DNA of 64,000 bases, taken from positions 418,996,001 through 419,060,000 of the forward strand of contig NW_027362771.1 of the NCBI RefSeq assembly GCF_046119375.1. The letters are read 5' to 3'. Within the stretch, counting starts at the first letter, position 1, and each line of letters begins with the position of its first letter. Position numbers and translations under genes: made by a program. Below, one piece after another: positions 5,439 through 56,812 of this stretch. The stretch is from Phyllobates terribilis (lineage: Eukaryota). Under the pieces are notes generated by a model. The model saw only the letters and a list, made by a program, of their open reading frames with translations. It did no database searches and was not told the DNA's origin.

Positions 5439-5447
5439 TTCCCCCCT
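5439..5447 (-). promoter_or_regulatory. Polypurine tract AGGGGGGAA
   Basis: Directly abuts the TG of the 3' LTR on the minus strand. Confidence 0.9.
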
Positions 5448-9939: not shown

Positions 9940-10895
9940 GAACAGTACCTTGCCATATGTCCAGGTTGATTGCAGCGGCGGCAGATGGGTCGCCCGTCCT
10001 CGCTGTATCGGTCACTGGGTCTTCCTCTGGCCGGTGGGGTCCTCCTTGGTCGACGCCACGGGATGTCCTCCGGTCCGGATGCCAGCTGGATCTTCCCTGG
10101 GGTGGAAGCCTGTAAAGACTGCACAGTTCGGGTTAGCGCAGCAACGCTCTTAGCTAGCTCTTGGACCTGATGGTGTAGGTCTGGAGCCGGGTCATTGTCC
10201 AAAGCCTGCGCATCAGCTCCCACAGGCCCTGCCGACAAGGGCGCCGCCTCCTGGTGGTAAGTGATAGCAGGGCGCTTGTGGGTCACAACGCCACCCGGTG
10301 CCGGTTCTCGGAGCACCCGGATGGCTCTGTCCTTGAACTGTGCAAAGCCCAGATGGGGATCCTGTAAGGCCATTGCCCGCAACTGGGTTCGGTGGGTATT
10401 ACAATACAGTCCCTCTATAAACTGTTCGGTCAACAGCCTGTCCTCGTTTCCCACTCCATCAGGGTCGGTCTGCTTAATGGCCCTCAGGGCCTCTTGTAGG
10501 TTTAGTGCATAGTCCCTTACACTCTCATGCGCTCGCTGCTTGCACCCGTAGAATCTAAGCTTAATCTCGGCTGAGGTGCGGGTATCAAAGGTGTCCTTCA
10601 GCCGGGTTAGTATCCCTGCGACAGTCTTCCTCCCAGGTGGCCAGGATTTTACTTCCCTTTTGGCTGCCCCGGTTAGTTGGGCCACTAGGATGCTCACTTT
10701 TTGCTCTTCTGTGAGGGGGTACACCTGGAAGAGGCTATCCAGCTTTTCTCTAAAGTCATGCAGGGTATGTGACTCCCCTGAGTACTGGGGTAGCCAAGCT
10801 GCTCCCGGGATATAGGGCATGGTGAAGGGCATAACTGCAGCAGCGGTAGCGCTGGCGGGGGTTGAGGCAGTGAAGCTCTCCTCCGTATCCGACAT
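9915..10895 (-). CDS. gag: Gypsy Gag with CCHC zinc knuckle
   Basis: 326-aa ORF with capsid-like helical core and CRRCNQPGHMARYC; lies between PBS and pol. Confidence 0.92.
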   Translation of the reverse strand: MSDTEESFTASTPASATAAAVMPFTMPYIPGAAWLPQYSGESHTLHDFREKLDSLFQVYPLTEEQKVSILVAQLTGAAKREVKSWPPGRKTVAGILTRLKDTFDTRTSAEIKLRFYGCKQRAHESVRDYALNLQEALRAIKQTDPDGVGNEDRLLTEQFIEGLYCNTHRTQLRAMALQDPHLGFAQFKDRAIRVLREPAPGGVVTHKRPAITYHQEAAPLSAGPVGADAQALDNDPAPDLHHQVQELAKSVAALTRTVQSLQASTPGKIQLASGPEDIPWRRPRRTPPARGRPSDRYSEDGRPICRRCNQPGHMARYCSLNGHNLG

Positions 10896-11313
10896 CTTCC
10901 TCCCCCCTAGTGGACCGTGGCCTACCTTGCGATGATCCTGTTCCGTAGGCCGCGGCTCCGCAGTGGATCGTCAGGGTTGAGGACCTTCCGTCGCGCTCCT
11001 GTGACGTCGGCGTCTGCTGGGCTCCTTCCAGGACCTTACGCAACGTCCGGACGTGAGGCGGGGCTTCAGTTCTCGCGCGCTTTCAGAGTCCACGCCCCTC
11101 TTCTTCCCGCGCGGCGTCCTCAAGATGGCGTCCAATGGCGGGAAAACTCCACGGATGGCGGGAAGAAGGCAGAAGATGGCGCCGGATGGCGGGAAACTTC
11201 ACCGATGGCGGGAAGAAGGCTGAAGATGGCGCCGGATGGCGGGAATCTTCACCACAGGTAAGTTTGAAAAGTCTCTTTTTCAGGCACGCAGTACCCGGTG
11301 GTTGCGGGCACGA

Positions 11314-11332
11314 AATCCTGCCGACTACGCCA
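11314..11332 (-). promoter_or_regulatory. Primer-binding site complementary to tRNA-Ser 3' end
   Basis: TGGCGTAGTCGGCAGGATT, 4 nt (ACTT) after the 5' LTR; complements the vertebrate tRNA-Ser end ...AATCCTGCCGACTACGCCA (tRNA sequence recalled, not searched). Confidence 0.9.
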
Positions 11333-11336
11333 AAGT

Positions 11337-12303
11337 TGACGCGCCCCTGGGCCTGTGTCGCGCTGCGTTGCGCACGCGGGAGCTTACCCGGAGCCGGATC
11401 TCTTGAGGGTTGTAGTCTCGTGGCGGTGACCCGGTCCGTGCCCAGGGAGTCAAACTGAGCGGCGATGTAACAGCGGTAGATGTAGGACGACTACGCCACC
11501 CGTTGAATGCAGCTATGGAGCTGCCGCTGCAGGACAGTCCGCTGAGGCCGGTGGATGGATGGTGCAGCGTAGATGGTATAACCCCCAACGGGAGGGGTAT
11601 GGCCTCAGGGCAGCAGATGTGGATGATGGGGGTAGCAGGAACCACTCAGAGACGGTGCGGTGTAATTCAGGGTCTTTACTGGTAACAACGATAGACCCTC
11701 CCGGAGTACTTGCTAGTGAACGGGGCCTGGTCAGTCCTTGAGCAGATGGGATCTCCCCTGGCCAGGCGGAGTTGTAGGCCTCCCAAACTGACTGTACTCT
11801 TCTGGCTACCTTGCTAGAAGCGGATATAAGTAGCCCACGTCCCTGAGTGTACCGTGTGGTGCTCACCCGTATGGCCGGTGACTCGGGGCCTTCTAATGGC
11901 TTCCGCTCCACGATGGCGGTGCTGGTCCCACGCGTGTGACCGTGCCTTCGGGTTTCTGGGCCTGAGGACCTGAAATCCCCTGCCGGTCGGCTTCTGCTGC
12001 TGGGTAAGAGTTAGTCCCCACAGCCTCGGACGCCGGGTCCGGTAAGAAAGCTTCTCAGTCAGGGCGAGCTCTGCAGCTGCCAGCCCCTGACTCGTAGTAG
12101 TATTGCTTCTGCTGTTTCTTGTCTCTACTCTCCTTGACTGACTAACCCTGCCTCAGCCCAGGGTTTATACAGGGGAAGTTCTTCCCCTCCCAAGACTGGG
12201 CAGGAGGTGTGGCATGCACAGGATCCCTGACCAAAGGACCTCCCACCTGCTCTCAGACATAACATTACATTACTGTGGAAAACCAGACCCCTGGGGTGCC
12301 ACA
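11337..12303 (-). repeat. 5' LTR of Gypsy element
   Basis: Direct repeat of 4472-5438, followed by the PBS in element orientation. Confidence 0.97.
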
Positions 12304-15685: not shown

Positions 15686-16664
15686 GGCATTTCAGGGAGG
15701 GGGGCGCAGGTACATTAGATAGGTAGAGATAACCAATGATAGCATCGATTGTGGACATGTGATTAGACTGGAAGTGGGGCTAACTGCCGTAAGAGCATAT
15801 GTGGTGTATGCGGCGCATGAGGCCCCAAGACCGCCCCCAACATGTGACCTCCGATTTCTTGCCAGTGAACCACAAGCAGGCAGCATTGTCAGGGTAACTG
15901 CCTGTACACATGCTTAATCCTCAGTATGGGGCAAATGAACAAAAAACATGTATCATCACCAGTGATAAACAGCAGATCCACTAGATAAATATACTGCCAC
16001 ATAAGGTCAATGTCTATAGGTGCCTCAAAGGCAACATTTCAATAAGGAGATCGTTATCACTACTGCAAGGATCAAAGTTGGGGTATATTATGGAGAAAAT
16101 CTGCACTAGCCACAATGTAAACGCACAAGAATTTGTCATCTCATAATTTGTCATACAACATAAAATAAAGAATAAAAAGTAAAAAAATAAACCTCCTACA
16201 TTAAACATATTTCTTCACGAAGGTGTTAAAATAATAATATTGGTAATAATATAATATTTATAGATCACATATAATATTTCTAATATGCAAAAATGCCTGG
16301 AATACCCAACCCAAAGGACGTCTATTATTTCAAACAATGACAATTATTCTATGTGATAAGACAAATATGTGTCTCATAGTGCAAAGGGCAAAAAAATGTG
16401 CTATTACCTTAGACATTAATCATAATTAGTGATACTGTGAATAATTATTATTATTATTATTAAATATTTATATAGCGCCATTAGGTTCCATGGCGCTTTA
16501 CAAGTGTAGGGGCAGACAGGGACACGAACATGAAACATCAAGCAAGGCACACTGGTACAGTAGGGCAGGGGGTCCTGTCCACGAGGGCTCACAGTCTATA
16601 GGGGGTGGGTGGGGAGACATGAGGAAGGGGACAGGAGAGGGTGAGATGGTGTAGCGGATGGGTC

Positions 16665-19600
16665 TCAGTGTGGGCTGTAGGCCTGAAGGAAGAGGTGGGT
16701 CTTTAGGTTTTTCTTGAAGGTTCCCAGGTTAGGGGAGTGTCGGATGTGATGGGGGAGAGAGTTCCAGAGTATGGCGGATGCACGAGAGAAGTCTTGTAAG
16801 CGGTTGTGGGAGGAGGAAATGAGAGGGGAGAAGAGGAGCAGTTCTTGAGAGGAGCGAAGATCGCGCGGGGGGACATATCTGGAAACCAGGTCGGAGATGT
16901 AGGGAGGGGACAGGTTATGTATGGCCTTGTATGTTAGGGTTAGGGTTTTGAACCGTGATCTCAGGGCAATGGGGAGCCAGTGAAGGGTTTGGCAGAGGGG
17001 GGAGGCGGGGGTGAAATGGGGAGATAGGTGGATGAGTCGGTCAGCGGAATTGAGGATGGTGCGGAGAGGTGCGAGGGAGGAAGCGGGGAGGCCAGTGAGC
17101 AGGGGGTTGCAGTAGTCGAGACGGGAGATGATGAGTGCGTGGATAAGCGTTTTTGCCGAGTCCTGGTCAAGGAACGAGCGGATTCGGGCAATGTTCCTCA
17201 GTTGGAGTCGGCAGGCGGTGGCGAGGGCTTTGATGTGGGGCTTGAAGGAGAGGGAGGAGTCAAGGATTTCCCCGAGGCACTTGCCGTGGGAGACGGGTGA
17301 GAGGGTGCAGTCGTTGATTGTGATGGATAAGTTGTGGAGCTGGGGAGAGCGGTTGGGGGAGAAGACGATTATCTCGGTCTTGTCCATGTTGAGTTTCAGG
17401 AATCGGGCAGAGAAGAAGGATGAGATGGCGGATAGGCATTGGGGAATTTTGGATAGTAGGGCGGAAATGTCGGGGCCAGACAGGTAGAGCTGGGTGTTGT
17501 CAGCGTAGAGGTGGTATTGGAGGCCGTGGGATTCGATGAGTTTCCCCAGGCCGAGGGTGTATGCGGAGTAGAGTAGTGGTCCCAGGACTGAGCCTTGGGG
17601 AACTCCAACAGAAAGGGGGTGGGGCGAGGATGAGGTGTGGGAGTTGGTGACGCTGAAAGTCCAGTCCGTTAGGTAGGAGGAGATCCATGAGAGGGCTAGG
17701 TCAGTGATGCCAAGGGATTCTAGGATGTGGAGTAGGAGGGGGTGGTCGACTGTGTCAAAGGCGGCGGAGAGGTCGAGAAGAAGGAGGACGGAGTAGTGTC
17801 GCTTGCTCTTGGTGGTCAGTAGGTCGTTGGTGACTTTAGTTAGGGCTGTTTCGGTTGAGTTGTGGGGTCGGAAACCGGATTGAAGGTGGTCGAAGAGGGA
17901 AGAGGAGGAGAGGTGGGAGGACAGCTTGCTGTTCAAGTAATTTTGAGGCAAAAGGGAGGAGAGATATCGGGCGGTAGTTGGAGACTATTGCAGGGTCAAG
18001 GGAGGGTTTTTTGAGGATAGGTGTGATTGTGGCATGCTTGAAGGATGATGGGAAAGTGCCGGATTTAAGTGATAGGTTGAAAAGATGGGTTAGGGCGGGG
18101 GTGAGGACAGTGGTGAGGTTAGGGATGAGGTGGGAGGGGAGGGGGTCGAGGGCACAGGTGGTGAGGTGTGAGTGAGCTAGCAGAGAGGAGAGGAGGTCTT
18201 CTGTCATGGGGGAGAAACTACATTTGGGTGAAGGGGGTTGGGCGCCGAGCGGCTTGTAGATTGAAGCTTTGTCTGACTTTGTCAATCTTGTTCTTGAAGA
18301 AGGTGGCAAAGTCGTCGGCTGAGATGAGGGGCGAGGGGGGGGTGCAGGGGGACGGAGTAGAGAGTTGAAGGTATTGAAAAGTTGCTTGGGTTTGCGGGAT
18401 TTGGTGGTTATTAGGGAAGAGAAGTAGTCTTGTTTTGCATTCGTGAGAGCAGTCTTGAAGGCGGTGAGGGACTGTTTGAACGGGGTGAGGTGTTCAGCGG
18501 AGTGGGATTTCTTCCATTTCCTCTCAGCCACTCTAGACGTCTGCCGAAGTTTTTTTGTGAGGGGCGTTAGCCAGGGTTGTCTGTGTGCACGGGTTGTGAC
18601 GTGTCAGAGCGGGGCAGCTTGGTCGAGGGCTGTGCTGAGGGTGTTGTTGTAGAGGGTGGCGGCGGCGTCGGCGTCCTGAGATGAAGCTAGGCCGGAGAGA
18701 GGGAGGAGGCACTCGGAGAGTGAGTGGAAGTCGATGAGTTTGAGGTTTCTACGGGGATGGGGGAGTGTGCGGGGAGGGGCGATCAGAGAGGGGGGGAGAG
18801 GGAGGAGAAGGTCAGTAGGTTGTGGTCAGATAGGGGGAGAGGTGAGTTTTCGAGGTCAGCGAGGGAACAGAGGCGGGTGAAGACAAGGTCCAGTGTGTGG
18901 CGGATGAGGTCCATTGGGAGAGACCGAGGGAGGAGGTTAGGCATAGGAGTCAGAGGCGGCGGTGCAGGGGGTGTCAACGGGGATTTTGAAGTCACCCATG
19001 ATGATGGTGGGGATGTCAGAGGAGAGGAGGTGGAGGAGCCAGGTTGTGAAGTAGTCAAAGAAAGAGGAGGGGGATCCTGGGGGACGGTAGATAACTGCCA
19101 GTTGGAGGTTGCAAGGGGAGAAGATGTGCATGGAATGTGCCTCGAAGGAGGGGAGGGGATAGGAGGGGGGCGGCGTAATCGGGACGAAGGAGCATGTGTA
19201 GGCCAGGAGTAGGCCGACGCCTCCACCGCGGGTGTTGTTGGGGCGGGGGGTGTGGGAAAATGTAAGTCCACCGTAGGAGAGGGCGGCCGGGGAGGTTGTG
19301 TCAGAGGGGGTGAGCCAGGTTTTCGTGATGCCGAGGAAGGAGAGTTTTTTGGAGATGAAGAGGTCATGGATGTATGGAAGTTTATTGCAGACCGAGCAGC
19401 AGGCGTTCCAGAGGGCGCCCGGAAGGGAGACTGGGGAAGCAGGGGCGGGAGGGATGGGTCTGAGGTTGTTGAGGTTACGGGGGTTGGTTGTATGTCGTGG
19501 GAGTGGGGGGGTGGTGTGATGGGGTGGGCCAGGATTAGGGGAGATGTCACCCGCAATTTGGAGGAGCAGGGAGAGGGTGAGAAGGTGCGGGCTGGAGAGC

Positions 19601-19750
19601 TTGCGTGGCGGGCATGTTTGTTTGGACATGGAGGGTTGAAAGTGGAGGAACAGTTCTGAAGAGAGGGTGAGGTGAGTAGGTAGGATGGAGGGAGAGATGA
19701 GCATTTCATTACTGGGAGGAGTGATGAGTGGGGGTAATAGGAAGTGGAGA
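16665..19750 (-). pseudogene. L2 ORF2 (APE endonuclease + RT) broken by several frameshifts
   Basis: APE: ALWNA, GITKTWL, GGGVGLL, IYRPPG, MGDF. RT: [40 protein letters not shown]. Pieces lie in different frames. Confidence 0.9.
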
Positions 19751-20089
19751 AGGATGGGAGTGAGGGTGAGAAGAAGCGGGAACATTGCGGGGGTGAGTAG
19801 TGGGCGAGAGGTGACAGGGGTAGGAGGCAGCCCGGGAGCGATGTAGGTGGGGTGAGTCCTAGTGGGGGAAGGTGGCCACATGTGAGGTGCTGCTGGGGGA
19901 TAGGATGCGATCAGGGATGGGGAGCAGTTCAGGGATGGGTTGCAGTCCGGGGGAGAGGTACAAGCAGCCGGGGTAGAGATGAAGGTGAAGTAGCCGGGGG
20001 GTGATGCAGCAGCCGTGGACGAGGTGATGGAGCCTGGATGAGAGGGTGCGGCTGGGGATAGGATGATACGGCAGGGATGGGGTGATGCG

Positions 20090-20640
20090 GCAGGGATGAG
20101 ATGAAGCAGCCGGAGATGAGGTGATGCAGCAGGGATGAGATGAAGCAGCCGGAGATGAGGTGATGCAGTAGGGGTGAGATGGTGCAGTCAGAGATGAGGT
20201 GATGTAGCCGCGGTGAGGTGATGCAGCCGAGATGAGAGGAGGCAGCCGAGGATGAAGTGAAGCAGCCGATGATGGGAAGATGCAGCCGAGGATGGGAAGA
20301 TGCGGCCGAGGATGGGAAGATGCAACCAAGGATGGGATGATGCAGCCGAGGATGGGATGATGCAGCCGAGGGAGGGATGATGCGGCCGAGGATGAGATGA
20401 GGTGGCAGAGGATGGGATGAGGCAGCCGAGGATGGGATGATGCAGCCGAGGATGGGATGATGCAGCCGAGGATGGGATGATGCAGACGAGGAAGGGATGG
20501 TGCAGCCGAGGATAGGATGATGCAGCCGAGGATGGGATGATGCAGCCGAGGATGGGATGGTGCAGCCGAGGATGGGATGATGCAGCCGAGGATGGGATGG
20601 TGCAGGTGGTGCAGCCAAGGATAGGATGATGTAGCCGGTA
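20090..20640. repeat. 20-bp minisatellite (GATGGGATGATGCAGCCGAG)n within the L2 5' region
   Basis: Roughly 18 clear copies plus degenerate variants. Confidence 0.9.
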
Positions 20641-22895
20641 GCTGAATGATGCAGCCAGGGGCTCAGAAGCGGCTGGCAGGGGCAGGGGCAGGCAGCAGGG
20701 TGGGAGGCAGGATGAGAGGCAGCCAGCAGGGTCAGAGGTGGCCAGCAGGGTCAGAGGTGGCCAGCAGGGTCAGAGGCGGCCAGGAGGGTCAAAGGTGGAC
20801 AGGAGGGTCAGAGGCGGCCAGCAGGGTCAGAGGCAGCCTGAGGGGGTTCATTGCGGCCGGGGGGCCGGGTGCGGTGGGGAGTCAGGTGCGGTCGGGTCCT
20901 GTGAAGCTGAGGGCCCAGTTCATTCAGGGGTACGTTGCAGATAAGGGCCTGAACCTGCAGATGGGCCAGGTGTAGCTGAGGGCCCAGCGAGGTCGGGGGG
21001 CATGGTGCGGTCAGGGCCAGCGCAAGCAGGTGCAGTCAGGGGCCAGGTGTAGCTGGGGCCCAATATAGCCTGGGGTACGGTGCAGTCAGGGCCGGCATAG
21101 ACTGGTGCGGCCAGGTGTGGCTGAGGGCCCGGTGCGGCCTGGGGTATGGACCAGACGGTCTTGGCTGCGGTGTGGGCAGCTGTGGGGCACCGGGTCGGGG
21201 CGGGCCAGTGTGGGGGTCCGCTGCACAGTCGATAGGCTGGGAGCTGCAGTGGGCTCCACGCTAGGCTGGGGCCGATAGAGGCACCGAAGGCGTCACTGCC
21301 AGTCCCCGCACAGCCCACGGCCCCGCACCGCTGTGGGGGGTCCCGAGGGCAGCGCTGGCCGCTCCACTTGGTCCTCAGCTGGGTATGCTGCGGTGGACCC
21401 CGTGGGAGCACAGATTGCCCTCTGCGGCCCACAGCTCTGTAGCACCGCGGGGGACCAGGCACAGGTACGGGAGCCCAGGAGGGGGCAGGCCAGGCCGCGG
21501 TCGGGCCTGCAGCAATGGCGGGGTGTGGAGGACAGGGACGGCGGCACTGCACTTACCGGTGGTCCAGGCGGTGAAGAGCCGCACGGAGGTCCGGGGCTGC
21601 AGAAGCGCGGATGAGCGCCGCAGCCTTTGTGGGACCGTGCCGGGAGCGCTGGAGGCACCCGGGTGCCGTCGGTGTCGGGGATTCAGGCCCAGGTGAGGAG
21701 CCGCAGGGCACGGCCGCTGGCAGCACACAGGCAGACCAGCCAGAGGGTCTGGTAGGTGGCCCAGATGGTCGGAGAGTGCCCGAGGGTGGTGTAGGTGAGG
21801 ATGGTAGTGTGTAGGGAGGACGGGCGACCTTGGATGCGGTGGATGGTGTCCAAGTGCCTGGAGCCTCCCTACGTGCGACCATCACCCCCGGCGGCCCTAA
21901 GATAAGAAAATAGACACCAACGCCATTATTCATAAAACGGGAATATGGCTTTATCGAAAGTGAGAAGAGAACATAAGTGCATAAACAATGAAGACATTAG
22001 ACCCAAGTGATAAAAGTGTTATGGCAACCAATCATACGTGGTAGACATATATAGTGCCATACCATACATATCAAAATGCATGACTGATAAAATAGTGATA
22101 TGCAAAACACTCATCAATGGGGACCAGAAAAAGAGACTATGTGTACAAGGGTGGGTGATGGCTTATCAAAGTGAGAGCATTATCCCACCAGTGAAAGTAG
22201 TTATAGGGTATTGTTATCACACCCGTGAGTTTACATCAGGACATTTGTAATATTAATCCGACCTCTTCTCTTACTCATATACACAAGCATCCTCAGCTCA
22301 AGATATTTCAGAGCTAATTTAGCCTAATTATATAGTCCTAAAGGAGATGTTACCGCCAATATAAATAGATATTATAACACCCCATCTATATTATATTATA
22401 TTATATTACATTAAGACCCGTATGTAAATGGCATCATAATTGATCCCCAGGACATTCGATGGCAGTAGTAAATAAAGTCCCGGCAGACTGTTGTTGTAAT
22501 CAGACATATCAAAATAATATGTCTTTTCTTTTGTGTGTAGATATCACCAAAGCATCCTCCGCCAGTCAGAGTTCACCAATCATCAGGTAAGTCCATTACC
22601 GGCCAAATGTCACATATATCAACTACACAAAGAAAAGCTAGATAAGTGAAATGAGATAAGAAAAATTAAACATGATGGAAAACAATCCCCCCCCAGATAC
22701 TGAAACAATTTAAAAAAATGCACTGAATCCAAAATTTTCATGAAGCCCACTAGGTACAACAGTATTTAATCTAGAGATCCATTTGCTCTCTACTAGTGCA
22801 AGCATTTTGCAATTCCTTCCCCGGGACCCATAGATATACAAGATCAATACCTTCTATTTAAAGAATGCTGGAGTTACTCTGATGATGTTGATTAC

Positions 22896-43898: not shown

Positions 43899-45155
43899 AG
43901 CGGTATTTTGTGATGGGCTGGTGACCTTATGAGTTTTGGTCTGCCCCCATCATATGGAGCTACTCTGAAGTCTGAGAGCGTGAACGGATATCAAAACTGG
44001 TGAGGATGTTCCATTTCTATATATAGTAAGGTTAAATGGTCACCATTGATAGGGCTAACGTTTCCATGTTCTCACATATTTGAGGCACAACCAGTTGGTA
44101 TAGTGTACCGCAGGCTCCATTTTTTCTTATTGCCATTTTTCCCTTGGTTGTGTCAGAGATATAATATGCTTATATGACATATATCTTTATCTTTGGAAGC
44201 AACAATATATGGAAGTTTTTTGGCTATTGTATATCACAGACAGTTCATCTGTGTGTTTTTATGTCCTTGTATTTTGCACATATTTTATCCTATGGTAATA
44301 AATGTTAAGTTTTAAGTTTCTATAACACTACACCTGCTTGCATCTATATTATGTACAGGGATAAACACTGTACTGAACACATCTGGACCTGCCTACAGGA
44401 CCTCACATATTATATATGGGGCCATATAGTAGAATCTGATGTGCTGTAGGTTCAGGTGTAATCAGTCTGGGTCCTGTATTGTGAGGTCTGTGGCCTCTGC
44501 TGGGGCTCAGTGTGATTTATTGCACCAGAATGAACTTTCCACACTGACAGGACGACCCTAATCTGCATCGAAGTTCAGACTCCTGCAATAACTTACACGT
44601 AGCCCCTCTGACCTGACAATATAGAATCCTGGGTGAGGAGATGAGCAGCGTCCTGCTGCCCCCTCACTGCAGACCTTCTGACCACATATTTATCCACGGT
44701 GGTCTCTGATCCACAGGCTCCTCTCCGGCACTAAATCAGCTCCAGGCGCCCTGTGTCATCAAAGCAGCAGACGCAGCCACGTAGTGTGCAGTGCAGGGAG
44801 CGTGTCTGCATCTCTGCGATGTGGCAAGCACAGCTGCTGAACAAAGGTACAGTGCGGTTCCCCGTATTTTTCGGACCACAAGAAGCACTTTTTTCCCCCC
44901 AAACTTGGGAGGAAAATGGGGGGGTGCGTCTTATGGTCTGATCAAAAACAGTTGCATACGTGATAGTTGTGGTGGCAGCAGCAGAAGAGGTGAGATGCTG
45001 CGGGCCAGTGTCTAGCTAGGGAGTGGTGAGCGGCACTACTTTCCGGTGTGCGCGGCCATCTTCCTGAAGCTGTGATCTACAGGAAAATAGCCGCCCAAGC
45101 CGGCGCATGTGTGGCGCCCCTGCTACGCATGTGTGCCACAGATCCTAGAGGGGTG

Positions 45156-47791
45156 TGTAGCACCCCGAGGGCTCGGCTGCTACAGGGGTATTGCACCTCA
45201 AACCAGAGGTGTGATATTCCACTCCCGGGTAAGGATGGAGTGTGGACCAGGACTCGTTAGGCTGCATGTGTAGCACCCCGAGGGCTCGGCTGCTACAGGT
45301 GTATTGCGCCTCAAACCAGAGGTGTGATATTCCACTCCCGGGTAAGGATGGAGTGTGGACCAGGACTCAGTAGGCTGCATGCACCACACACACCCCATTT
45401 CCGAGGGACAGCTCAACGGTGCTCCCACTAGACAGAAGTGCAGGCACGACAGCATCTGTCCCTGGCTGGAGTGGGGAGGGGAAAGTACACCCAGTGGTGT
45501 AGGAGCAGATAGGGGTGGGTCTCTGGGCATAGGTAGGAGCCCATCGGTTGCTAGTCACCTGGGCTCGGGTGTTAGAAGGAGGTATATAAGGTGGGCACCA
45601 TCTTAGAGTAGTGAGTTCAGTCAGGAGGAGAAAAGGAGAGGAGCTCAGCCAGAGAGGGCTGACAGGGAGCTGTGGCTCAGTCTGGGCCCAGCTCCAGAGG
45701 CAGGCCTGGAGTGGAGGCCAGAAACAGCAGAAAGAGAGAGAAGAAAGAACAGAAAGGAAAGTAAGAAAGGAACTGGAACATAGGAGAAAGGAAGCAAGGA
45801 ACACAGAGAAAGGCCCAGAGACACGAAGACAGAAGGAACCCCATATGCCCAGGAGATACAGGGTGAAGGGTTGGCAGAACAGGGTACCGGAACCCAAATT
45901 GGTGGAGGCAACAGATTCCTCAGCCAAAGACCGGAGGTTGTTACCACATCTTGGTGCGACCCCTCACTACATCCACCAGGAAGGCATACCATATAGGGTC
46001 AGGGACGCAGAGATCAGCGTGCCCAGAGAAGGCCCGAGGGAGCTGGACAAAGGTGGGTCACTGGTGGGGATGGCCAGAGAAAGGAAAGGAAGGGAGCCCT
46101 GTGCCACGCTCTGGAATTGCCTGGGAGTTGGTCGAGTCCCTTGCCTGGTGAACGCAGCATGGCTCAGGCGGTCCCTCATGTGCACAAGTGACCAGAATAA
46201 CAACCGTGAGTAAAGCTTTGGAAACTGCAATTACAAGTCTCTGTGTTTCATCGCCGCACCAGCACCATCAGTACTGGGACACTCACACCGTCACTCCCAT
46301 CATCCACATTAGCTGCCCTGAGGCAATACTTCTCCCGTGGGGAGTTATCCCATACTCGGCTGCGCAAACAACATCAGCCTCAGCGGTCGGCAGCACAGCG
46401 GCGGTCCCCACTGACCGCAATCCACGGGTGGCGTAGTCGGACAATTACAATACCAATAGACTGCCACTGGTTTGACCGCCCTGGGCACGGACCGGGTCAC
46501 CGCCACGGAGAACTACAACCCCCAGCGATCCGGCTCCGGGTATCCCCCTGCACAGCACGGGCCCAGGGGGCGCGTCACATGCACCACACACACCCCATTT
46601 CCGAGGGACAGGTCAACGGTGCTCCCACGAGACAGGAGTGCAGGCACGACAGCATTTGTCCCTGGCTGGAATGGGGAGGGGAAAGTACACCCAGTGGTGT
46701 AGGAGCAGTTAGGGGTGGGTCTCTGGGCATAGGTAGGAGCCCATTGATTGCTAGTCACCTGGGCTGACACATAGAGGGAAGTATATAAGGTGGGCACCAT
46801 ATTAGATCTGAAGTCAGTTCAGTTCAGTCAGGAGTTCAGCCAGAGAGGGCTGACAGGGAGCTGTGGCTCAGTCTGGGCCCAGCTCCAGAGGCAGGCCTGG
46901 AGTGGAGGCCAGAAACAGCAGAAAGAGAGAGGAGAAGGAACGGAAAGGAAAGTTAGAAACAAGGAACTGGAACATAGGAGAAAGGAAGCAAGGAACACAG
47001 AGAAAGGCCCAGAGACGCGAGTAAAGAAGGAACCCCATATGCCCAGGAGATACAGGGTGAAGGGTTGGCAGAGCAGGGTACCGGAACCCAAATTGGTGGA
47101 GGCAACAAATTCCTCAGCCAAAGACCGGAGGTTGTTACCACATCTTGGTGCGACCCCTCACTACATCCACCAGGAAGGCATACCATATAGGGTCAGGGAG
47201 ACCAGAGATAGGTTTCGCCAATAGAAGGCCCGAGGGAGCTGGACAAAGGTGGGTCACTGGTGGGGACGGCCAGAGAAAGGAAAGGAAGGGAGCCCTGTGC
47301 CACACTCTGGAATTGCCTGGGAGTTGGTCGAGTCCCTTGCCTGGTGGACGCAGCACGGCTTGGGCAGTCATCGCCTGCAGGATTGACACGAATAACAACT
47401 GTGAGTAAAGCATTGGAAACTGCAACCGCACGTCTCTGTGTTTCATCGCCGCACCAGCACCATTAGTACTGGGACGCTCACACCATCACTCCCACCATCT
47501 TCCACACTAGCTGCCCTGAGGCAACACTTCTCCCGTGGGGAGTTATTCCATACTCGGCTGCGCAAACTACATCAGCCTCAGCGGTCTGCAGCGCAGCGGC
47601 GGTCCCCACTGACCGCAATCCACGGGTGGCGTAGTCGGACACTTGTTACAACATTAAGACTGCCACTGAATTGACCACCCTGGGCACGGACCGGGTCGCC
47701 GCCACACGGAGACTACAACCCCCAGCGTCCCACCAGAGACCCGGCTCCGGGTAACTCACACACGTGCGTACATGGCCCAGGGGGCGAGTCA
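45156..47791 (+). mobile_element. Middle solo LTR (1323 bp net), TSD GGTG, same family as the CSD element LTR
   Basis: GGTG|TGTAGCACCCCGAGGG...GGCCCAGGGGGCGAGTCA|GGTG; interrupted after 113 bp. Confidence 0.9.
45269..46577 (+). mobile_element. Inner solo LTR (1309 bp), TSD CATG, same family
   Basis: CATG|TGTAGCACCCCGAGGG...GGCCCAGGGGGCGCGTCA|CATG; the host LTR resumes with CACCACACAC. Confidence 0.92.
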
Positions 47792-49428
47792 GGTGCATGA
47801 ACGGATTCCTCCACAAGACGCCCTCACAGCATACACACACCTCCACCTTCCACCTCAGACCACCAGAGGGAGCCCGTTAGGGATAGAAATAGGGAAGGTG
47901 GAGCTAGGCAGAGTAGTTCCTCTGAAGAGTTCCTGCAGTAGAGAAGCCTGAGAGAGGTCAGCCTGCAGTGGAGCTCAGTCCAGAGAGAGCTCAGGTTAGT
48001 GAGCCCAAGGCATGCCGACGCCATAAGAGCGGTGAAGTGCGGCAAGCTGCCGCTAGTGTGTACAGCCTAGTGAGGGCCTCGAGCGAGGCCGAAGGCTAGA
48101 GGAGTGAGTAGCATTGGGGGCAGAGGAGCTGTACAAGCTCACCCCAGAAAACAAATACCGGACACCGGGTCCGCGTCTACAGGGCCGTATATCCCCCTGT
48201 AGAGACAACCGGAGACCCCTGGAAGACTTCAGGTCCCAGGATCACCCAAGAGCTGATACGTAACAGAGCCATGAGTCATGGAGACCCCACAAGCTGGGAG
48301 TGTGTACTCCAAGAGAAGGCCCTACCACAAAGTCAGCCGGTGCAGGACAGAGACAAAGTTAGGCCTAGCTCCAGGCAGGTCAGAAACTTACCACACAAAG
48401 GCAAGAAACAGGAGGCCCTATACCCGCTCACTGGGGAGGATCCTGATATGCACCCTTCACCCTACAGTGCTCCGGGATGTGGCTGAATTTCCATCAGTAA
48501 AAGGTACTGAAGTGACTATTGTGTCTGTCCCTGTTTTTACTCTGGCCCGGCTGGGTCACCTCTGTCCTGCATCCCTGCATCTCATCTCCCCGCTGCCCTG
48601 AGGCCTAGCTCCACCTGTGGGGAGCTATACCATGCAAGCTGCCTTAACACCGGCCTCAGTGGACTGCCGCAGTACTGGTGATCCTCACCAGACACCACAG
48701 GTGGCGTCACGAACTTATATATATAATTATCCACTCCTTTTAAAAGAGAGGCCCAGGGTACGGCCCAGGGAGCCGACTACTGCGACATCCCCAAGATCAG
48801 ACAACAAGGCCCGGGCGCCGAGTCATCCCCATCCCCTAGGCGCGACACATGTGCAGATTTGTAGCATGGGCAGCCATTGCCCTGTAGATCACAGCTTCAG
48901 GAAGATGGCTGGAAAGCCACGCCCACAGCTCTGCCACACCGCTCACCAGCCCCTGCCTGCAGCTCTGCCATGCCGCTCACCGGACCTGGCCCGCAGCTCT
49001 GCCACACCGCTCACCTGCTCCGGTCTGCAGATCTGCCACGCCGCTCATGGGACCTGGCCCACAGCTCTGCTACACCGCTCACCGGACCTGGCCCGCAGCT
49101 CTGCCACGCCGCTCACCGGCCCAAGCCCGCAACTCTGTCACGCCGCTCACAGGCCCCGGTCCACAACCAGACCCCGGGCCCCAGCCGTCTCACCTCTTCT
49201 GCTGCAGCTGCCAGGTTCCTGAGGGAGGGAACAGAGGGCCCATCAATCCTGCTCCACCACCACTGCAACTCCTGGCTGCTGGAGCACCGGCTTCCTGAAG
49301 GACCCTGCCTCCTGTGACCCTCGCTCCACCGCCCCCCAGGTAAGATAACGTACCTATTCAGACTATAAGGCAGGCTCCCATCTTATAAAAGATATTTTTT
49401 TCCTATATTCCACCCCAAAATTACGTTA

Positions 49429-49806: not shown

Positions 49807-50240
49807 TTCTAGTTGACTCATGAGAGCAGGTGTGCAAAGTGCATACTTGTAGTTACATAATAACTGCTGGAACCGGCAGAATCCAACCATGTACTGTATA
49901 TATTATATTAAATTATATGTCTGGCATCTACTTTATTCATTGTCTGTGGAACTGATGGAAATAGCTGAGTGCAGCGCTCAGCAGCTCTATAGATAATGAA
50001 TAGAGAAGAAACAAAACATGCACAATTCTGCTCCATTCTGGACTGCAGAGCCCTGTTCTCAGAATATCTGGGGAGCCCAGTGATCGAATCTCCAGGGATC
50101 AGCAATTATGCACAATCCAATATACCGTACATACACACACATATACATAATATACATACACATATGCCGTACATACACACAAGCACTTATGCCGTACATA
50201 AACACACACATATACCGTACATACACACACATCATACATA

Positions 50241-51458
50241 TGTAGCATCCCGAGGGCTCGGCTGCTACAGGGGTATTGCACCTCAAACCAGAGGTGTGAT
50301 ATTCCACTCCCGGGTAAGGATGGAGTGTGGACCAGGACTCAGTAAGCTGCATGCACCACACACACCCCATTTCCGAGGGACAGCTCAACCGTGCTCCCAC
50401 TAGACAGAAGTGCAGGCACGACAGCATCTGTCCCTGGCTGGAGTGGGGAGGGGAAGGAAAACCCAGTGGTGTAGGAGCAGATAGGGGTGGGTCTCTGGGT
50501 ATAGGTAGGAGCCTATTGGTTGCTAGTCACCTGGGCTCACACATAGAGGGAGGTATATAAGGTGGGCACCATCTTAGAACAGAGTTCAGTTCAGCCAGAG
50601 GAGAAGGACAGAAACAGCAGAGAGAACAGGAACAGAAGAGAAAGGAAACAAGGAACAGAACATTAAGAGAGGCCCAGAGACACGACAGAAGAAGGAACCC
50701 CATAGGCCCAGGAGATTGCGGGTGACGGGTTGGCAGAACAGGGTACCGGATCCCAAATTGGTGGAGGCGACTAATCCTCAGCCAAAGACCGGCGGTCGTG
50801 ACTATATCTTGGTGCGACCCCTCACTATACCTACCAGGAAGGCACACCACATAGGGTCAGGGACGCAGAAATCAGCATACTAAGAGAAGGCCAAAGGCAG
50901 CCAGACAAACGTAGAGTCACTGGTGGGGCACGGCCAGAGAAGGGAAGAGAAGGGAGCCCTGTGCCACGCTCTGGAATTGCCTGTGAGTTGGTCGAGCCCC
51001 TTGCCTGGTGGACGCAGCACGGCTTGGGCAGTCACCGCCGGTGCCGAGGTGACTAGGACCAGTAAAGAACTGTGAGTAAAGCATTGGAAACTGCAACCAC
51101 ACGTCTCTGTGCTTCTTCGCCGCACCAGCACCACCAGTGCTGGGACGCTCGTGCACCATCACTCCCATCATCCGCACTAACTGCCCTGAGGCTATACTTC
51201 TCCCGTGGGGAGTCGTCCCATACTTGGCTGCGCATACAACATCAGCCTCAGTGGTCTGCATCGCAGCAGCGGTCCCCACTGACCGTAATCCACGGGTGGC
51301 GTAGTCGGACAATTATAATACTACTAAGTCTGCCACTGGTTTGACCACCCTGGGTACGGACCGGGTCATCGCCACGGAGACTACAACCCCCAGCGATCCG
51401 GCTCCGGGTATTCCCCGCATACACGTGCAAGCACAACACAGGCCCAGGGGGCGAGTCA
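50241..51458 (+). repeat. 5' LTR of CSD element
   Basis: TGTAGCATCCCGAGGG...GGGGGCGAGTCA, followed by ACTT and the PBS. Confidence 0.95.
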
Positions 51459-51462
51459 ACTT

Positions 51463-51487
51463 TGGCGTAGTCGGCAGGATTCAAACC
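51463..51487 (+). promoter_or_regulatory. tRNA-Ser primer-binding site (extended match)
   Basis: TGGCGTAGTCGGCAGGATTCAAACC; first 19 nt identical to the PBS of the autonomous Gypsy. Confidence 0.92.
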
Positions 51488-51897
51488 AGCCCGCTACCAC
51501 CGGGTACTGCGCGCCTTCAGAGACTGAGATACTTACTGTGGTGAAGTTTTCCCGCCATCCGGAGTCATTTCCCGCCATTGGACGCCATCATGGGTCGTTT
51601 CCCGCCATCTTCATCCGTTTTTCCCGCCCCGGCAGAGCGGACGCCATTATGTGCGCACCAAATGACAGCAGGAAGCCGCCTCCCATTGTGGGCCAGGTCC
51701 CAGAGTGGCGCCAGAGAAGGGGCCCGCCCCCAGCAACTATGAGTGCAGCAATGGAGATGTCCATCAACGTGGGGGGGCTGCCCCTAAAGGTGATTGTCAG
51801 CAGATGCCCCCAAGACCACCCCCCATAGGGGCGGATAGGAAAGAAAACTGTGGGGCCGCGTGCGGCCTGGATCAGTCAGGACACACCACACCCGGAG

Positions 51898-53280
51898 ATG
51901 GAAGGAGCCGCAAACCCCACCAGCACCCTGGCCCACAGCCTGCTGCAGGCCGAACCACCGTGCAGCCTGACGGAGTTGCTGGCGCAGCTGCCCAGAGACC
52001 CGGAGTGTGCGCGAGTAGCGCTAGAAGATCTAAATCGGAGGATGGTCCGGGCGCAGCGAGATGTGTTTGCCGGGTGGAAGGAGGAGTTGGCCCGGCAGCA
52101 CGTAAACCGCCAGCAGGAGACAACACCAGGGCCGGGCAGCACGCCTGCCTCCGAGGGCGGTGAAGGTGGACCGGCAGCTGCGGACGCCGCCGCGGAGGAG
52201 GCCACAGAGACTGAGGCAGGTAACGGGGACGTCATCACCCCAAACCCTGAGGCCACCAGCCGGCCCCCACCTTCCGTTGCGGGACCCGAAGCCCCGGGGA
52301 CCGTACCTGACACCACGCCTCCACCGCCGCCAGCTAGGCCTCAGGCTGCAAGCGTCGCTGTCACGCCCCGCCCCACGCTGTGCCCTTTGAACCCGGGCGC
52401 AGTAAAGAGAGAGACGTCACAGGCCGGGACGCAAGGCCTAGTGCACCCGGGCGCCACTGCCTCACCAGCACCCCCTACCTTGACTGTGCCACTCCCGGGC
52501 ACAACCAGCAGACGACCACCGGCCTGGTCGCAAGGCCGAGTGCCCCCGGGCGCTGCTCCCCGACTGGGGTCCCCTGCCATACCACCGCTGGGCGTGGACC
52601 TGTTTGCCCATCATACTGGTCCGGATGGACTGCTGCTGGAATGGCCGGCTGAACTGACCAGCGGTCAGCCCTGGAAAACCCAGCCCCCGCGCGAGCCTCT
52701 GATACCGGCTCCGGAGCCCGTACAGAACACCCCGCTCCCGCTGGAAGACGCCCAATTTGAGTGGGACCCCACTGGCGAAAATCTAATGGGGTTCCCCCAA
52801 GAAACCCGGGCGGACACAGCCTGCCGCTTGGAGTCCTGCCGTCAGCAGCTGGCGATCTTCGAGAGAGAGCGGCGGCAGAGACGCATCAGGGAGGAGCGAC
52901 TCCAAGCCCGGAGCGCGGAACAAAAGCGGAGGGCCCGCCAGGACTCCCAAGCCATTCGCGGTCCTCGAACCACCGGGACCGTGGTAAAGTTCCAGCTGGA
53001 GCACGGCTGGGGCTTCATTAGATACCCGCAGGCCGCAACCGACGTCTTCGTGACCAGAAGAGACGTTGAGAGCCACCTGCCAGAGGGACATCACGGACGT
53101 GACCTGTACCCTGGTGACGTGGTCACTTACACCCGGCACAAGGGCGCTAAAGGACTGTACGCCCTCCATGTCCACCGCTTGACCGAGGAGGAACTGCGGT
53201 ATCGCCCAGACACTGAGTACCCTGAGGGTCCGGACGGACCTGAAGACTACCCAGTAGAGCAAGGAGGACATCATTATTGA
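51898..53280 (+). CDS. 460-aa protein: helical N-terminus, Pro-rich linker, Arg/Glu-rich coiled coil, C-terminal cold-shock domain (about 52972-53181), acidic tail
   Basis: First in-frame ATG at 51898 (track start 51850 is GTG). TGTVVKF..EHGWGFI (RNP1-like), DVFVT (RNP2-like), LYPGDVVTY...GAKGLYALHV align by eye with CspA TGIVKWFNADKGFGFI...DVFVH...GAKGPAAGNV. Confidence 0.88.
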   Translation: MEGAANPTSTLAHSLLQAEPPCSLTELLAQLPRDPECARVALEDLNRRMVRAQRDVFAGWKEELARQHVNRQQETTPGPGSTPASEGGEGGPAAADAAAEEATETEAGNGDVITPNPEATSRPPPSVAGPEAPGTVPDTTPPPPPARPQAASVAVTPRPTLCPLNPGAVKRETSQAGTQGLVHPGATASPAPPTLTVPLPGTTSRRPPAWSQGRVPPGAAPRLGSPAIPPLGVDLFAHHTGPDGLLLEWPAELTSGQPWKTQPPREPLIPAPEPVQNTPLPLEDAQFEWDPTGENLMGFPQETRADTACRLESCRQQLAIFERERRQRRIREERLQARSAEQKRRARQDSQAIRGPRTTGTVVKFQLEHGWGFIRYPQAATDVFVTRRDVESHLPEGHHGRDLYPGDVVTYTRHKGAKGLYALHVHRLTEEELRYRPDTEYPEGPDGPEDYPVEQGGHHY

Positions 53281-53936
53281 ATAAACGGTAAAATGAACTG
53301 TATATAGTTACCCGTCAGGGTATAAGAACTGTTACTGAATTGGAGTATGGTCCCCGTTGGGACTAATGTGGAGCTGTTCCATGCCAAAGTTGCCATTATA
53401 ACCTTTACCAGGCTGAGGACTGTGAACAGCCATTCCCCCTTACCAACTGGCCGAGGACTGGGAACGGCCAATCCCTTGTAAATAGTTGTGCTTCTTAAAG
53501 CGCCCCCTACTGGTTTTATAAAAGAACTGCAACGTCTACCTCAGGACGAATTAAATGGATTGTTGCACCCTTAAGAGAAAGTGAACACCTGGTCGCGAGT
53601 TGCACAGCGGCCAGAACTCAAGAATGTGTTTTTGAAAAAGAAAAATGTTTCACTTGAAAATGTTTTATATGAAAAGGTTTTATATGCTGCTAGAGTAATA
53701 ATGCAAATGTTTTATGTAATGTTTTATATGCTAAAAGAGTTCCGGTAGTTTTGACCATAGCTAGTGAAAGAAGAATGTTAAAGAAAAGAAAAAGTGTACC
53801 AGTAACGTTAAAAGGGAAAAGTGCCTCCCATAAAGGGATGGGTTAATAGTGTCTTATATGCGAATGCATTCTAAAAATTTTGTATGTTTAAATTGTTTTT
53901 ATTCTTTTCCAGCCCGAGGACGTGCTGTGATTTACC

Positions 53937-53945
53937 AGGGGGGAA
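53937..53945 (+). promoter_or_regulatory. Polypurine tract AGGGGGGAA
   Basis: Abuts the 3' LTR; identical to the PPT of the autonomous Gypsy. Confidence 0.9.
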
Positions 53946-55163
53946 TGTAGCACCCCGAGGGCTCGGCTGCTACAGGGGTATTGCACCTCAAACCAGAGGT
54001 GAGATATTCCACTCCCGGGTAAGGATGGAGTGTGGACCAGGACTCAGTAAGCTGCATGCACCACACACACCCCATTTCCGAGGGACAGCTCAACGGTGCT
54101 CCCACTAGACAGAAGTGCAGGCACGACAGCATCTGTCCCTGGCTGGAGTGGGGAGGGGAAGGAAAACCCAGTGGTGTAGGAGCAGATAGGGGTGGGTCTC
54201 TGGGCATAGGTAGGAGCCCATTGGTTGCTAGTCACCTGGGTTCACACATAGAGGGAGGTATATAAGGTGGGCACCATCTTAGAACAGAGTTCAGTTCAGC
54301 CAGAGGAGAAGGACAGAAACAGCAGAGAGAACAGGAACAGAAGAGAAAGGAAACAAGGAACAGAACATTAAGAGAGGCCCAGAGACACGACAGAAGAAGG
54401 AACCTCATAAGCCCAGGAGATTGCGGGTGACGGGTTGGCAGAACAGGGTACCGGATCCCAAATTGGTGGAGGCGACTAATCCTCAGCCAAAGACCGGCGG
54501 TCGTGACTATATCTCGGTGCGACCCCTTACTACACCTACCAGGAAGGCACACCACATAGGGTCAGGGACGCAGAAATCAGCATACCAAGAGAAGGCCCGA
54601 GGCAGCCGGACAAACGTAGAGTCACTGGTGGGGCACGGCCAGAGAAGGGAAGAGAAGGGAGCCCTGTGCTACGCTCTGGAATTGCCTGGGAGTTGGTCGA
54701 GCCCCTTGCCTGGTGGACGCAGCACGGCTTGGGCAGTCACCGCCGGTGCCGAGGTGACTAGGACCAGTAAAGTACTGTGAGTAAAGCATTGGAAACTGCA
54801 ACCACACGTCTCTGTGCTTCTTCGCCGCACCAGCACCACCAGTGCTGGGACGCTCATGCACCATCACTCCCATCATCCGCACTAACTGCCCTGAGGCTAT
54901 ACTTCTCCCGTGGGGAGTCGTCCCATACTTGGCTGCGCATGCAACATCAGCCTCAGTGGTCTGCATCGCAGCGGTGGTCCCCACTGACCGCAATCCACGG
55001 GTGGCGTAGTCGGTCAATTATAATACTACTAAGTCTGCCACTGGTTTGACCACTCTGGGCACGGACCGGGTCATCGCCACGGAGACTACAACCCCCAGCG
55101 ATCCGGCTCCGGGTATTCCCCGCATACTCGTGCACGCACAACACAGGCCCAGGGGGCGAGTCA
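53946..55163 (+). repeat. 3' LTR of CSD element
   Basis: Direct repeat of 50241-51458. Confidence 0.95.
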
Positions 55164-55234
55164 CATACACACACATATTCCGTACATACACACAAATCAT
55201 ACATACACACACATATATACTGTACATACACATA

Positions 55235-56812
55235 CAGTAGGGAAAATAATTATTTGATCCCTTTCTATTTTTGTAAGTTTGCCCACTGACAAAGACATGA
55301 ACAGTCTATAATTTTAAGGGTAGGTTAATTTTAACATTGAGAGATAGAATATCCAACAAAAAAATAAAGAAAATCACATTGCATAAATTAGATAAATTTA
55401 TTTGCATTTTGCTGTGAGAAATAAGTAGTTGATCCCCTACAAACCATTATGAGTTCTGGCTCCTACAGACCAGTTAGACGCTCCTAATCAACTCGTTACC
55501 TGCATTAAAGACAGCTGCCTTACATAGTCACCTGTATAAAATACTCCTGTCCACAGACTCAATCAGTCAGACTCTAACCTCAACAACATGGGCAAGACCA
55601 AAGAGCTTTCTAAGGATGTCAGGGACAAGATCATTGACCTGCACAAAGTGGGAATGGGCTACAAAACCATAAGTAAGACACTGGATGAGAAGGAGACAAC
55701 TGTTGGTGCAATAGTAAGAAAATGGAAGAAATACAAAATGACTGTCAATCGACATCAATCTGGGGAACCATGCAAAGTCTCACCTCGTGGGGTATCCTTG
55801 ATCATGAGGAAGGTGCGAGAACAGCCTAAAACTACATGGGGGGAAATTGTTAATGATTTCCATGCAGCTAGGACCACAGTCACCAAGAAAACCATTGGTA
55901 ACACATTACGCCTTAAAGGCTTAAAATCCTGCAGTGCCCACAAGGTCCCCCTGCTCAAGAAGGAACATGTGCAGGCCCGTCTGAAGTTTGCCATTGAACA
56001 CCTGGATAATTCTGTGAGTTATTGGAGAAGGTTTTGTGGTCAGATGAGGCAAAAATTGAGCTCTTTGGCATTAACTCAACTCACCATGTTTGGAGGAAGA
56101 AGAAGGAGGAGTACAACCCTAAGAACATCGTCCCAACCGTGAAACATGGTGGGAGAAACATTATACTTTGGGGGTGCTTTTCTGCAAAGGGGACATGACG
56201 ACTGCACCGTATTGAAGGGAAGATGGATGGGGTCATGTATAGCGAGATTTTGGCCACCAACTCTTTCCCTCAGTAAGAGCATTGAAGATGGGTTGTGGCT
56301 GGGTCTTCCAGCAAGACAATGACCCAAAACATACAGCCAAGGCAACAAAGGAGTGACTCAAAAAGAAGCACAGTAAGGTCATGGAGTGGCCTAGCCAGTC
56401 TCCAGACCTTAATCCCATAGAAAACTTATGGAGGGAGTTGAAGCTCCAAGTTGCCAAGCGACAGCCTCAAAATCTTAATGATTTAGAGATGATCTGCAAA
56501 GAGGAGTGGACCAAAATTCCTCCCAACATGTGCGCAAACCTCATCATCAACTACAAAAAATGTCTGACTGCTGTGCTTGCCAACAAGGGTTTTGCCACCA
56601 AGTATTAAGTGTTGTTTGCCAGAGGGATCAAATACTTATTTCTCACTGTAAAATGAAAAAGAAAAATTATCTAATATATCCAATGTGATTTTTTGGGGGA
56701 TATTCTATCTCTCAATGTTAAAATTAACCTACCCTTAAAATTATAGACTGTTTATGTCTTTGTCAGTGGGCAAACTTACAAAAACAGCAAGGGATCAAAT
56801 ACTTATTTCCCT
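55235..56812 (+). mobile_element. Tc1-like DNA transposon, right terminus clipped
   Basis: TA|CAGTAGGGAAAATAATTATTTGATCC with long TIRs; right TIR ends ...GGATCAAATACTTATTTCCCT and fuses to another Tc1 fragment. Confidence 0.9.
55588..56608 (+). pseudogene. Tc1 transposase with frameshifts and stop
   Basis: [16 protein letters not shown]..., [25 protein letters not shown] spread over different frames; TGA at a conserved W. Confidence 0.92.

Follow-up and report, generated by a model that had tools for sequence, protein, structure and literature searches.

Several groups of retroelements are known to propagate without a full set of their own genes. LARD and TRIM elements, as well as the mouse ETn family (whose helper is MusD), keep their long terminal repeats (LTRs), primer-binding site (PBS) and polypurine tract (PPT), have lost gag-pol and are non-coding. 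Acutely transforming retroviruses are replication-defective and helper-dependent and carry a captured cellular gene, while HAL1 ('half-L1') is helper-dependent and encodes the RNA-binding ORF1p only, a protein made of a trimeric coiled coil, an RNA-recognition motif (RRM) and a C-terminal domain. In the LTR elements of bdelloid rotifers, gag and pol are kept and the additional ORF3s are env-like or encode an esterase or an exonuclease, with no cold-shock domain reported among them (PMC5408684). Here we describe an LTR retrotransposon of about 4.9 kb, the only gene of which encodes a protein with a cold-shock domain (CSD), found in a stretch of 64,000 nucleotides from the frog Phyllobates terribilis (contig NW_027362771.1, positions 418,996,001 to 419,060,000 of the forward strand; this whole stretch is hereafter called the window, and its first letter is position 1). 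The region is, as its anatomy and its family establish almost beyond doubt, a single member of a family of non-autonomous LTR retrotransposons found in hyloid frogs. The explanation that accounts best for the observations, and which we hold to be moderately probable, is that of a Gypsy-derived, helper-dependent element in which gag-pol has been replaced by a Y-box-type CSD gene that would serve the RNA of the element.

The element presents the parts of an LTR retrotransposon: paired LTRs that start with TG and end with CA, a target-site duplication (TSD), a PBS complementary to a tRNA and a PPT, with Gypsy-related cis sequences and without gag or pol. In a self-comparison of the window, the paired direct repeats (50241-51458 and 53946-55163) are 97.7% identical over 1218-1219 bp, with 28 mismatches and no indels (Jukes-Cantor distance of 0.023), and they enclose an interior of 2.5 kb. 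The sole coding content of the element is an intact open reading frame (ORF) of 460 amino acids (aa) counted from its ATG; an upstream GTG start would give 476 aa. The features are listed below by coordinates and strand; L001 and L002 are two related loci, and pLDDT is the per-residue confidence score (predicted local distance difference test) of AlphaFold2.

50237-50240, no strand: left TSD, CATA; weak alone, within a tandem repeat
50241-51458, plus strand: 5' LTR, 1218 bp, TG..CA, 97.7% identical to the 3' LTR
51459-51897, plus strand: leader, untranslated or weakly coding, its first 150 nt or so common to the leader of an autonomous Gypsy element of the window
51463-51487, plus strand: PBS for tRNA-Ser (AGA/TGA isoacceptors), first 20 nt perfect, 24/25 overall
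51649-53280, plus strand: frame at its longest, running to the stop from an upstream ATG that three copies share; uninterrupted in L001 and L002
51898-53280, plus strand: 460-aa ORF, the only gene of the element, with a good Kozak context and an ATG-GAG start kept in relatives
52000-52122, plus strand: predicted N-terminal helix, aa 35-75, pLDDT of about 80, conserved in the closest relatives
52123-52806, plus strand: Pro/Ala-rich linker, aa 76-303, predicted to be disordered, with a short conserved motif near its end
52807-52953, plus strand: long helix rich in Arg and Glu, predicted at aa 304-352 with pLDDT >90, immediately ahead of the CSD
52966-53178, plus strand: cold-shock domain, a five-stranded barrel, aa 357-427, by Pfam PF00313, AlphaFold2 and Foldseek
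53281-53936, plus strand: 3' untranslated interior, with blocks that L001 and L002 keep as well, among them a motif immediately before the PPT
53937-53945, plus strand: PPT, a purine run that directly abuts the 3' LTR and has a matching tract in the Gypsy element
53946-55163, plus strand: 3' LTR, 1218 bp, partner of the 5' LTR
55164-55167, no strand: right TSD, CATA, equal to the left copy

The PBS starts four bases past the 5' LTR, and its first 20 nucleotides (51463-51482) are perfectly complementary to the tRNA-Ser-AGA/TGA 3' end given in PMC10359600, a match that stretches to 24/25 nt; the assignment of PBS types to tRNAs is taken solely from tRNA sequences printed in papers, no tRNA genes having turned up for comparison. 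The Gypsy-type cis parts claimed in the original prediction (1218-bp LTRs, tRNA-Ser PBS and PPT) are all present within the stretch that it gave, and the single 460-aa ORF ending in a CSD was likewise recovered, together with the Arg/Glu-rich helix before the domain, which AlphaFold2 predicts as a 50-residue helix preceded by about 220 disordered residues. The CATA duplication that it had also reported is indeed present outside either LTR, but it carries little weight alone, because the element is surrounded by a CA-rich tandem repeat (unit of 21-25 bp) that constitutes the insertion site and continues on both flanks (50120-50240 and 55163-55236). Six relatives of the element have clean and distinct TSDs of 4-5 bp (ACAA, CATT, GGCCC, TAAA, TAGT and TATC).

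Upstream of the ORF, the extended frame contains one in-frame stop in the window copy and is open in L001 and L002; in L001 and in a further locus, L007, no stop interrupts it even across the PBS and into the LTR. Translation from the conserved upstream ATG, which would give a longer protein, was considered, and codon statistics disfavour it: in the extension the ratio of nonsynonymous to synonymous substitution rates (dN/dS) is 0.62-0.94, there is no excess of third-position changes, and dS is below that of the ORF. The extension is thus probably a conserved RNA leader rather than coding sequence, and for this reason the gene of the window copy is not counted as broken. The window and locus L004 also have antisense ORFs, of 163 and 471 aa, which were considered as genes and rejected; since their registers relative to the sense frame differ among copies, we regard them as by-products of a coding sequence rich in GC.

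The ORF occurs in other copies too, which was one of the checks set out with the original prediction. No recorded protein is identical to the 460-aa product. A word-indexed search of 5.8 billion proteins returned two relatives in Phyllobates terribilis, and an exhaustive profile search of 1.84 billion representatives returned 138 CSD proteins, among which the family-specific ones are all from frogs (Phyllobates terribilis, Ranitomeya variabilis, R. imitator, Anomaloglossus baeobatrachus, Bufo bufo and a few run assemblies), the remaining matches being dinoflagellate multi-CSD proteins and bacterial cold-shock proteins (Csps). At eight of the ten relative loci, long direct repeats flank the gene and a tRNA-Ser PBS follows right after the 5' repeat. 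The LTRs of these eight loci are as follows.

L001: LTR of 1247 bp, LTR identity 100%
L002: LTR of about 1200 bp, the 3' copy shorter, LTR identity 94-97%
L004: LTR of 1284 bp, LTR identity 99.5%
L005 (Bufo): LTR of 1132 bp, LTR identity 96.8%
L006: LTR of 1150 bp, LTR identity 99.8%
L007: LTR of 643 bp, LTR identity 99.2%
L008: LTR of 1174 bp, LTR identity 99.7%
L010: LTR of 1017 bp, LTR identity 98.7%

The other two loci were not resolved as LTR elements, L003 showing only a 339-bp repeat and no PBS, and L009 being a long gene model. Two PBS types occur in the family, the tRNA-Ser AGA/TGA type (the L001 PBS is the same as that of the window element) and a Ser-CGA type, both matching tRNA-Ser ends printed in papers. 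Shuffling of PBS types between CSD clades was considered and set aside as too weak, as the PBS mostly tracks the clade of the CSD, the sole exception being the mixed L005/L007 pair.

Individual copies show some peculiarities. The CSD copy at L002 has one frameshift. In the Anomaloglossus copy (L006:1584-11479), a nested insertion enlarges the CSD element to 9.9 kb; this copy was considered as an autonomous carrier of the CSD and rejected, since the insertion is a single nested element and not gag-pol. The nested insertion contains a 1142-aa ORF with no Pfam match, in which, by eye, the C-terminal part seems to resemble a reverse transcriptase (RT) with a GIY-YIG-type motif after it; this combination would point to a Penelope-like element. 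In the Bufo bufo copy (L005:6061-10896), a 362-aa ORF begins with the CSD and continues into a long C-terminal tail, and a same-frame ORF of 155 aa lies upstream, one stop separating the two; because the CSD opens its ORF, the domain order differs from that of the dendrobatid copies. Three Phyllobates gene models (P0002, P0009 and P0147) have a piece of the element ORF fused to a Harbinger transposase, a KRAB zinc-finger array or an R3H gene, and these fusions are likely annotation chimeras.

The only Pfam family found in the ORF is the CSD (PF00313; E=1.2e-7, 31.9 bits against a cut-off of 27, residues 359-426), which is also matched by 12 of the 13 family members, and a phmmer search against PDB sequences gave bacterial Csp and YB-1 as matches. 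AlphaFold2, run on the 13-sequence family alignment (a 3-sequence run gave the same topology), predicts a barrel of five strands with a pLDDT of about 90. In a Foldseek comparison of this model with PDB, the top 50 matches are all cold-shock domains, with template modelling (TM) scores of 0.85-0.89 to CspA and Bc-Csp and of 0.78-0.80 to YBX1 (root-mean-square deviation of 1.6-2.5 Å), so that HMMER, AlphaFold and Foldseek, the tools by which the domain was to be checked, all return a CSD. The RNP1-like motif GWGFI is present and VFV of RNP2 is kept, with a replaced residue beside each of the two (see below). A profile of the 13 family members scores 57 bits on YB-1/YBX2, 44 on the best bacterial Csp, 24 on LIN28, 22 on CARHSP1 and 20 on CSDE1, and the long eukaryotic loop aligns to Y-box CSDs with a gap of at most one residue; for these two reasons we assign the family CSD, at the level of sequence, to the Y-box type. 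It is no more than 25-30% identical to YB-1, and the ORF, in which only about 33 residues follow the CSD, lacks the C-terminal domain of Y-box proteins with its alternating basic and acidic clusters. The protein is for these reasons not a YBX family member, and is at most derived from one. From its fold, the CSD is expected to bind single-stranded nucleic acid.

A protein of this kind could act on the host rather than on the element, as a Y-box mimic or competitor that alters, in germ cells, the storage or translation of mRNA or silencing by small RNAs, to the advantage of the element. The Y-box type of the CSD fits such a role, the purifying selection described below is equally compatible with it, and Gypsy elements have been reported to be highly expressed in poison-frog ova (PMC6278860). 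Nevertheless, nothing in our results points to any host target, and a mimic would have to work with a CSD this distant from YB-1 and without the C-terminal domain. We consider this role unlikely, though it survives the evidence better than the other alternatives.

The interior of the element was predicted to lack capsid, zinc knuckle, protease (PR), RT and integrase (IN), and neither Pfam nor tblastn contradicts this. Profiles of the capsid (Retrotrans_gag and PNMA), zf-CCHC, protease, RT and integrase match none of the 13 family members; tblastn of the gag and pol of the window Gypsy element gave no match to the CSD element at E<2 (best E of 2.3), and tblastn for gag/pol relics in five relatives found none. 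The Gypsy element itself, complete and young, is located on the opposite strand:

4472-12303, minus strand: autonomous Ty3/Gypsy element, likely the helper lineage; LTRs of 967 bp, 99.7% identical; TSD TTGC

Its gag (326 aa) and pol (1351 aa) are both uninterrupted, the order in pol being PR, RT, RNase H (RH) and IN, and in its Gag zf-CCHC scores just above the cut-off and PNMA and Retrotrans_gag just below theirs. The CSD element has in common with it the LTR termini, an identical PBS and a matching PPT; the last 300 bp or so of the LTR are 73-75% identical between the two, and the shared leader of about 150 nt is 77% identical to 11336-11185, with TTCCCGCCAT-type repeats. The U3 region (the upstream part of the LTR) and the interior of the CSD element are unrelated to those of the Gypsy element. 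Because of these shared cis parts, the Gypsy lineage of 4472-12303 is the likely helper of the CSD element. A second non-autonomous element of Phyllobates (L002:1139-6199) has the same tRNA-Ser PBS and keeps gag without any pol domain; its Gag is 71% identical to that of the window Gypsy element, with a PNMA-like match just below the Pfam cut-off and a weak CCHC match, which makes it a gag-only sibling of the CSD-only family.

This sibling, which keeps gag alone behind the same PBS, lends some plausibility to the idea that the ORF is a very diverged Gag that builds its own particle, with the CSD at the position of the zinc-knuckle nucleocapsid: the ORF occupies the gag position, just past the leader, and, as in Gag, a domain expected to bind nucleic acid stands at its C-terminal end. 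The comparisons do not bear this out. Besides the lack of Gag profile matches in the family, BLASTP of the ORF against the window Gypsy Gag gave E=1.5 and hhalign of the family against a gag alignment a probability of 0.06%; the AlphaFold2 model contains no capsid-like domain, being composed of two helices, the disordered stretch and the CSD; and Foldseek against predicted viral structures returned just phage and giant-virus CSDs, with no Gag. A diverged gag, which had been named beforehand as a finding that would speak against the original prediction, is therefore not supported by BLASTP, by profile-profile comparison or by fold, and we regard it as slightly less likely still than a host-directed role.

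The selection acting on the ORF bears on whether the gene has any role at all. Between the window copy and L001 (Nei-Gojobori method, dS of about 1.15), dN/dS takes the following values.

Whole ORF: 0.34
CSD: 0.145
Helix before the CSD: 0.28
Linker: 0.43, poorly conserved
N-terminus: 0.44

These values, well below 1 as the original prediction required of a functional gene, agree with the comparison of eight intact copies, in which only alignment stretches with at least 30% local identity were kept: an excess of third-position changes is seen in 28 of the 28 pairs scored, and dN/dS is 0.13-0.44 wherever dS is unsaturated (0.235 in the within-species pair). As judged from these codon patterns, purifying selection has preserved the gene across lineages of the element, in no fewer than four frog genera. 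Functionless gene capture by LTR elements is known from maize Bs1, and with this precedent and the poorly conserved linker the ORF could be seen as a neutral passenger, that is, a captured host fragment without a role for element or host. The constraint on the CSD and the third-position excess in every pair are difficult to reconcile with such a passenger, as is an ORF that has stayed intact in four genera and across two tRNA-Ser PBS types, and we find this reading improbable. That the ORF is a host gene, domesticated or ordinary, which merely happens to lie between two LTRs, is most improbable of all. NCBI gene models do exist for relatives (that of Bufo bufo is named 'Y-box-binding protein 2-A-like'), but the loci of the copies are unrelated to one another, every copy comes with a TSD, PBS and PPT of its own, LTR identities reach 100%, and several of the models are chimeric with neighbouring transposase, zinc-finger or R3H genes.

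We thus return to a CSD protein that serves the element, which is probable in our judgement. The element would be transcribed from its LTR, and its RNA would be packaged with capsid and protease supplied in trans by Gypsy relatives; reverse transcription from the tRNA-Ser primer, and integration, would then be carried out by the RT and integrase of the helper. Such copying in trans is suggested by the young relatives, with LTRs up to 100% identical, and by the shared cis parts. The CSD was probably captured from a host Y-box mRNA, given that the gene is intron-less and its CSD is of the Y-box type. The protein would bind single-stranded RNA, most likely the transcript that encodes it, and might take the place of the Gag nucleocapsid, as ORF1p does in LINE-1, stabilising the RNA and competing for helper particles. 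In this regard, YBX1 and CSDA have been recovered with the LINE-1 ORF1p ribonucleoprotein (PMC3753637). The more specific role, in which the protein would coat or chaperone the RNA of the element itself, is a tentative proposal, to which we give less than an even chance; the germline, packaging and anti-silencing roles named in the original prediction are likewise conjectural. The most complete version, in which a host-derived Y-box protein was swapped for Gag-Pol and kept for tens of millions of years, making the family a parasite of Gypsy elements that coats its own RNA, is more doubtful again.

Several observations weigh against this explanation. The domain had been predicted to be Y-box-like, and the long loop and the motifs then quoted are indeed in the translation, but where YB-1 has a Trp before RNP1 the aligned family residue is Lys, and where it has the His of RNP2 the family has Thr/Asn, Thr being the residue in the window copy. 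We take this Trp and this His to be two of the four base-stacking residues in YB-1/RNA structures; the other two stacking positions, both Phe, are kept in the family. Because two stacking residues are replaced, binding may be altered, and the affinity of the protein for nucleic acid could be weak. The window copy is not young, its LTRs having diverged by 2.3%. The link to the helper is drawn from shared cis sequences only, and the host origin of the CSD from profile scores rather than from a phylogeny. Finally, the dN/dS ratios are rough, as dS is near or past saturation between most copies, and the relatives were drawn from annotated proteomes, which biases the set towards intact ORFs.

Further copies of the LTR family and other repeats are present in the window. 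LTRs related to those of the element had been predicted nearby, and two pieces were located:

45147-47730, plus strand: partial LTR array, two copies of the same LTR family, 85-94% identity

In the first piece the 5' part is duplicated, in the second it is cut short, and the two adjoin with no interior between them. A GC-rich tandem repeat (34-bp unit, about 7 copies) lies at 48917-49165, and just downstream of the CSD element there is a fragment of a Tc1/mariner transposase (55588-56142) with helix-turn-helix (HTH) domains of the Sleeping Beauty type and of the Tc3 type. The stretch 16001-22000 shows a strong excess of G over C (GC skew of 0.34-0.59), with a GC content of up to 64%, and contains a 20-bp tandem repeat of about 30 copies (20009-20605).

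Non-autonomous LTR elements are usually seen as non-coding hitch-hikers, and the CSD family keeps one gene that is neither gag nor pol, maintained by selection during its spread in frogs with very large, Gypsy-rich genomes. The family provides a vertebrate example in which the probable capture of a host gene by a Gypsy-type element could be dated, and it accounts for several frog gene models that are odd or chimeric and annotated as 'uncharacterized' or 'Y-box-like'. Should the protein serve the RNA of the element, a captured CSD would be able to supply a nucleocapsid-like function, and a parasite of retrotransposons would be able to invest in an RNA-handling protein of its own. If, in particular, it coats this RNA, the family would be the LTR counterpart of the ORF1-only LINE derivatives, with a cellular RNA chaperone standing in for the nucleocapsid.

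As to precedent, the original prediction knew of no described LTR element with a CSD as cargo, and our literature search, which included the papers on poison-frog transposable elements and on ORF capture in rotifers and left Repbase and Dfam outside, likewise found no published description of a CSD in an LTR retrotransposon. Helper-dependent LTR elements and gene capture are already known; what is new, to the extent of our checks, is that a conserved CSD gene under selection forms the sole cargo.

Among cellular proteins, the closest are YBX1 and YBX2, which give the best profile match for the family CSD and have the same long loop, whereas the family is 25-30% identical to them, has two base-stacking residues replaced, lacks the C-terminal domain, and is intron-less and LTR-flanked. 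With HAL1 and the LINE-1 ORF1p the family has in common that an RNA-binding protein is all that is encoded, and that a long helix precedes the RNA-binding domain, a likeness of layout only. Those elements are of the non-LTR class, the CSD protein has no RRM, and the trimer is proven for ORF1p, while the CSD protein is known here from its sequence and a predicted structure. The bdelloid rotifer elements with ORF3 and maize Bs1 are similar in having acquired modules from outside the gag-pol set, but the rotifer elements have both gag and pol (PMC5408684) and the CSD family has neither. As in the acutely transforming retroviruses, an intron-less coding sequence of cellular type replaces the viral genes and a helper would be needed; the CSD family differs from them in its RNA-binding cargo, in its Gypsy backbone and in a long germline amplification in several genera, where theirs is a somatic one-off. 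Finally, LARD, TRIM and ETn elements resemble the CSD family in retaining LTRs, PBS and PPT without gag-pol and in having cis parts in common with an autonomous partner, and the family differs from all three in keeping one long ORF under purifying selection.

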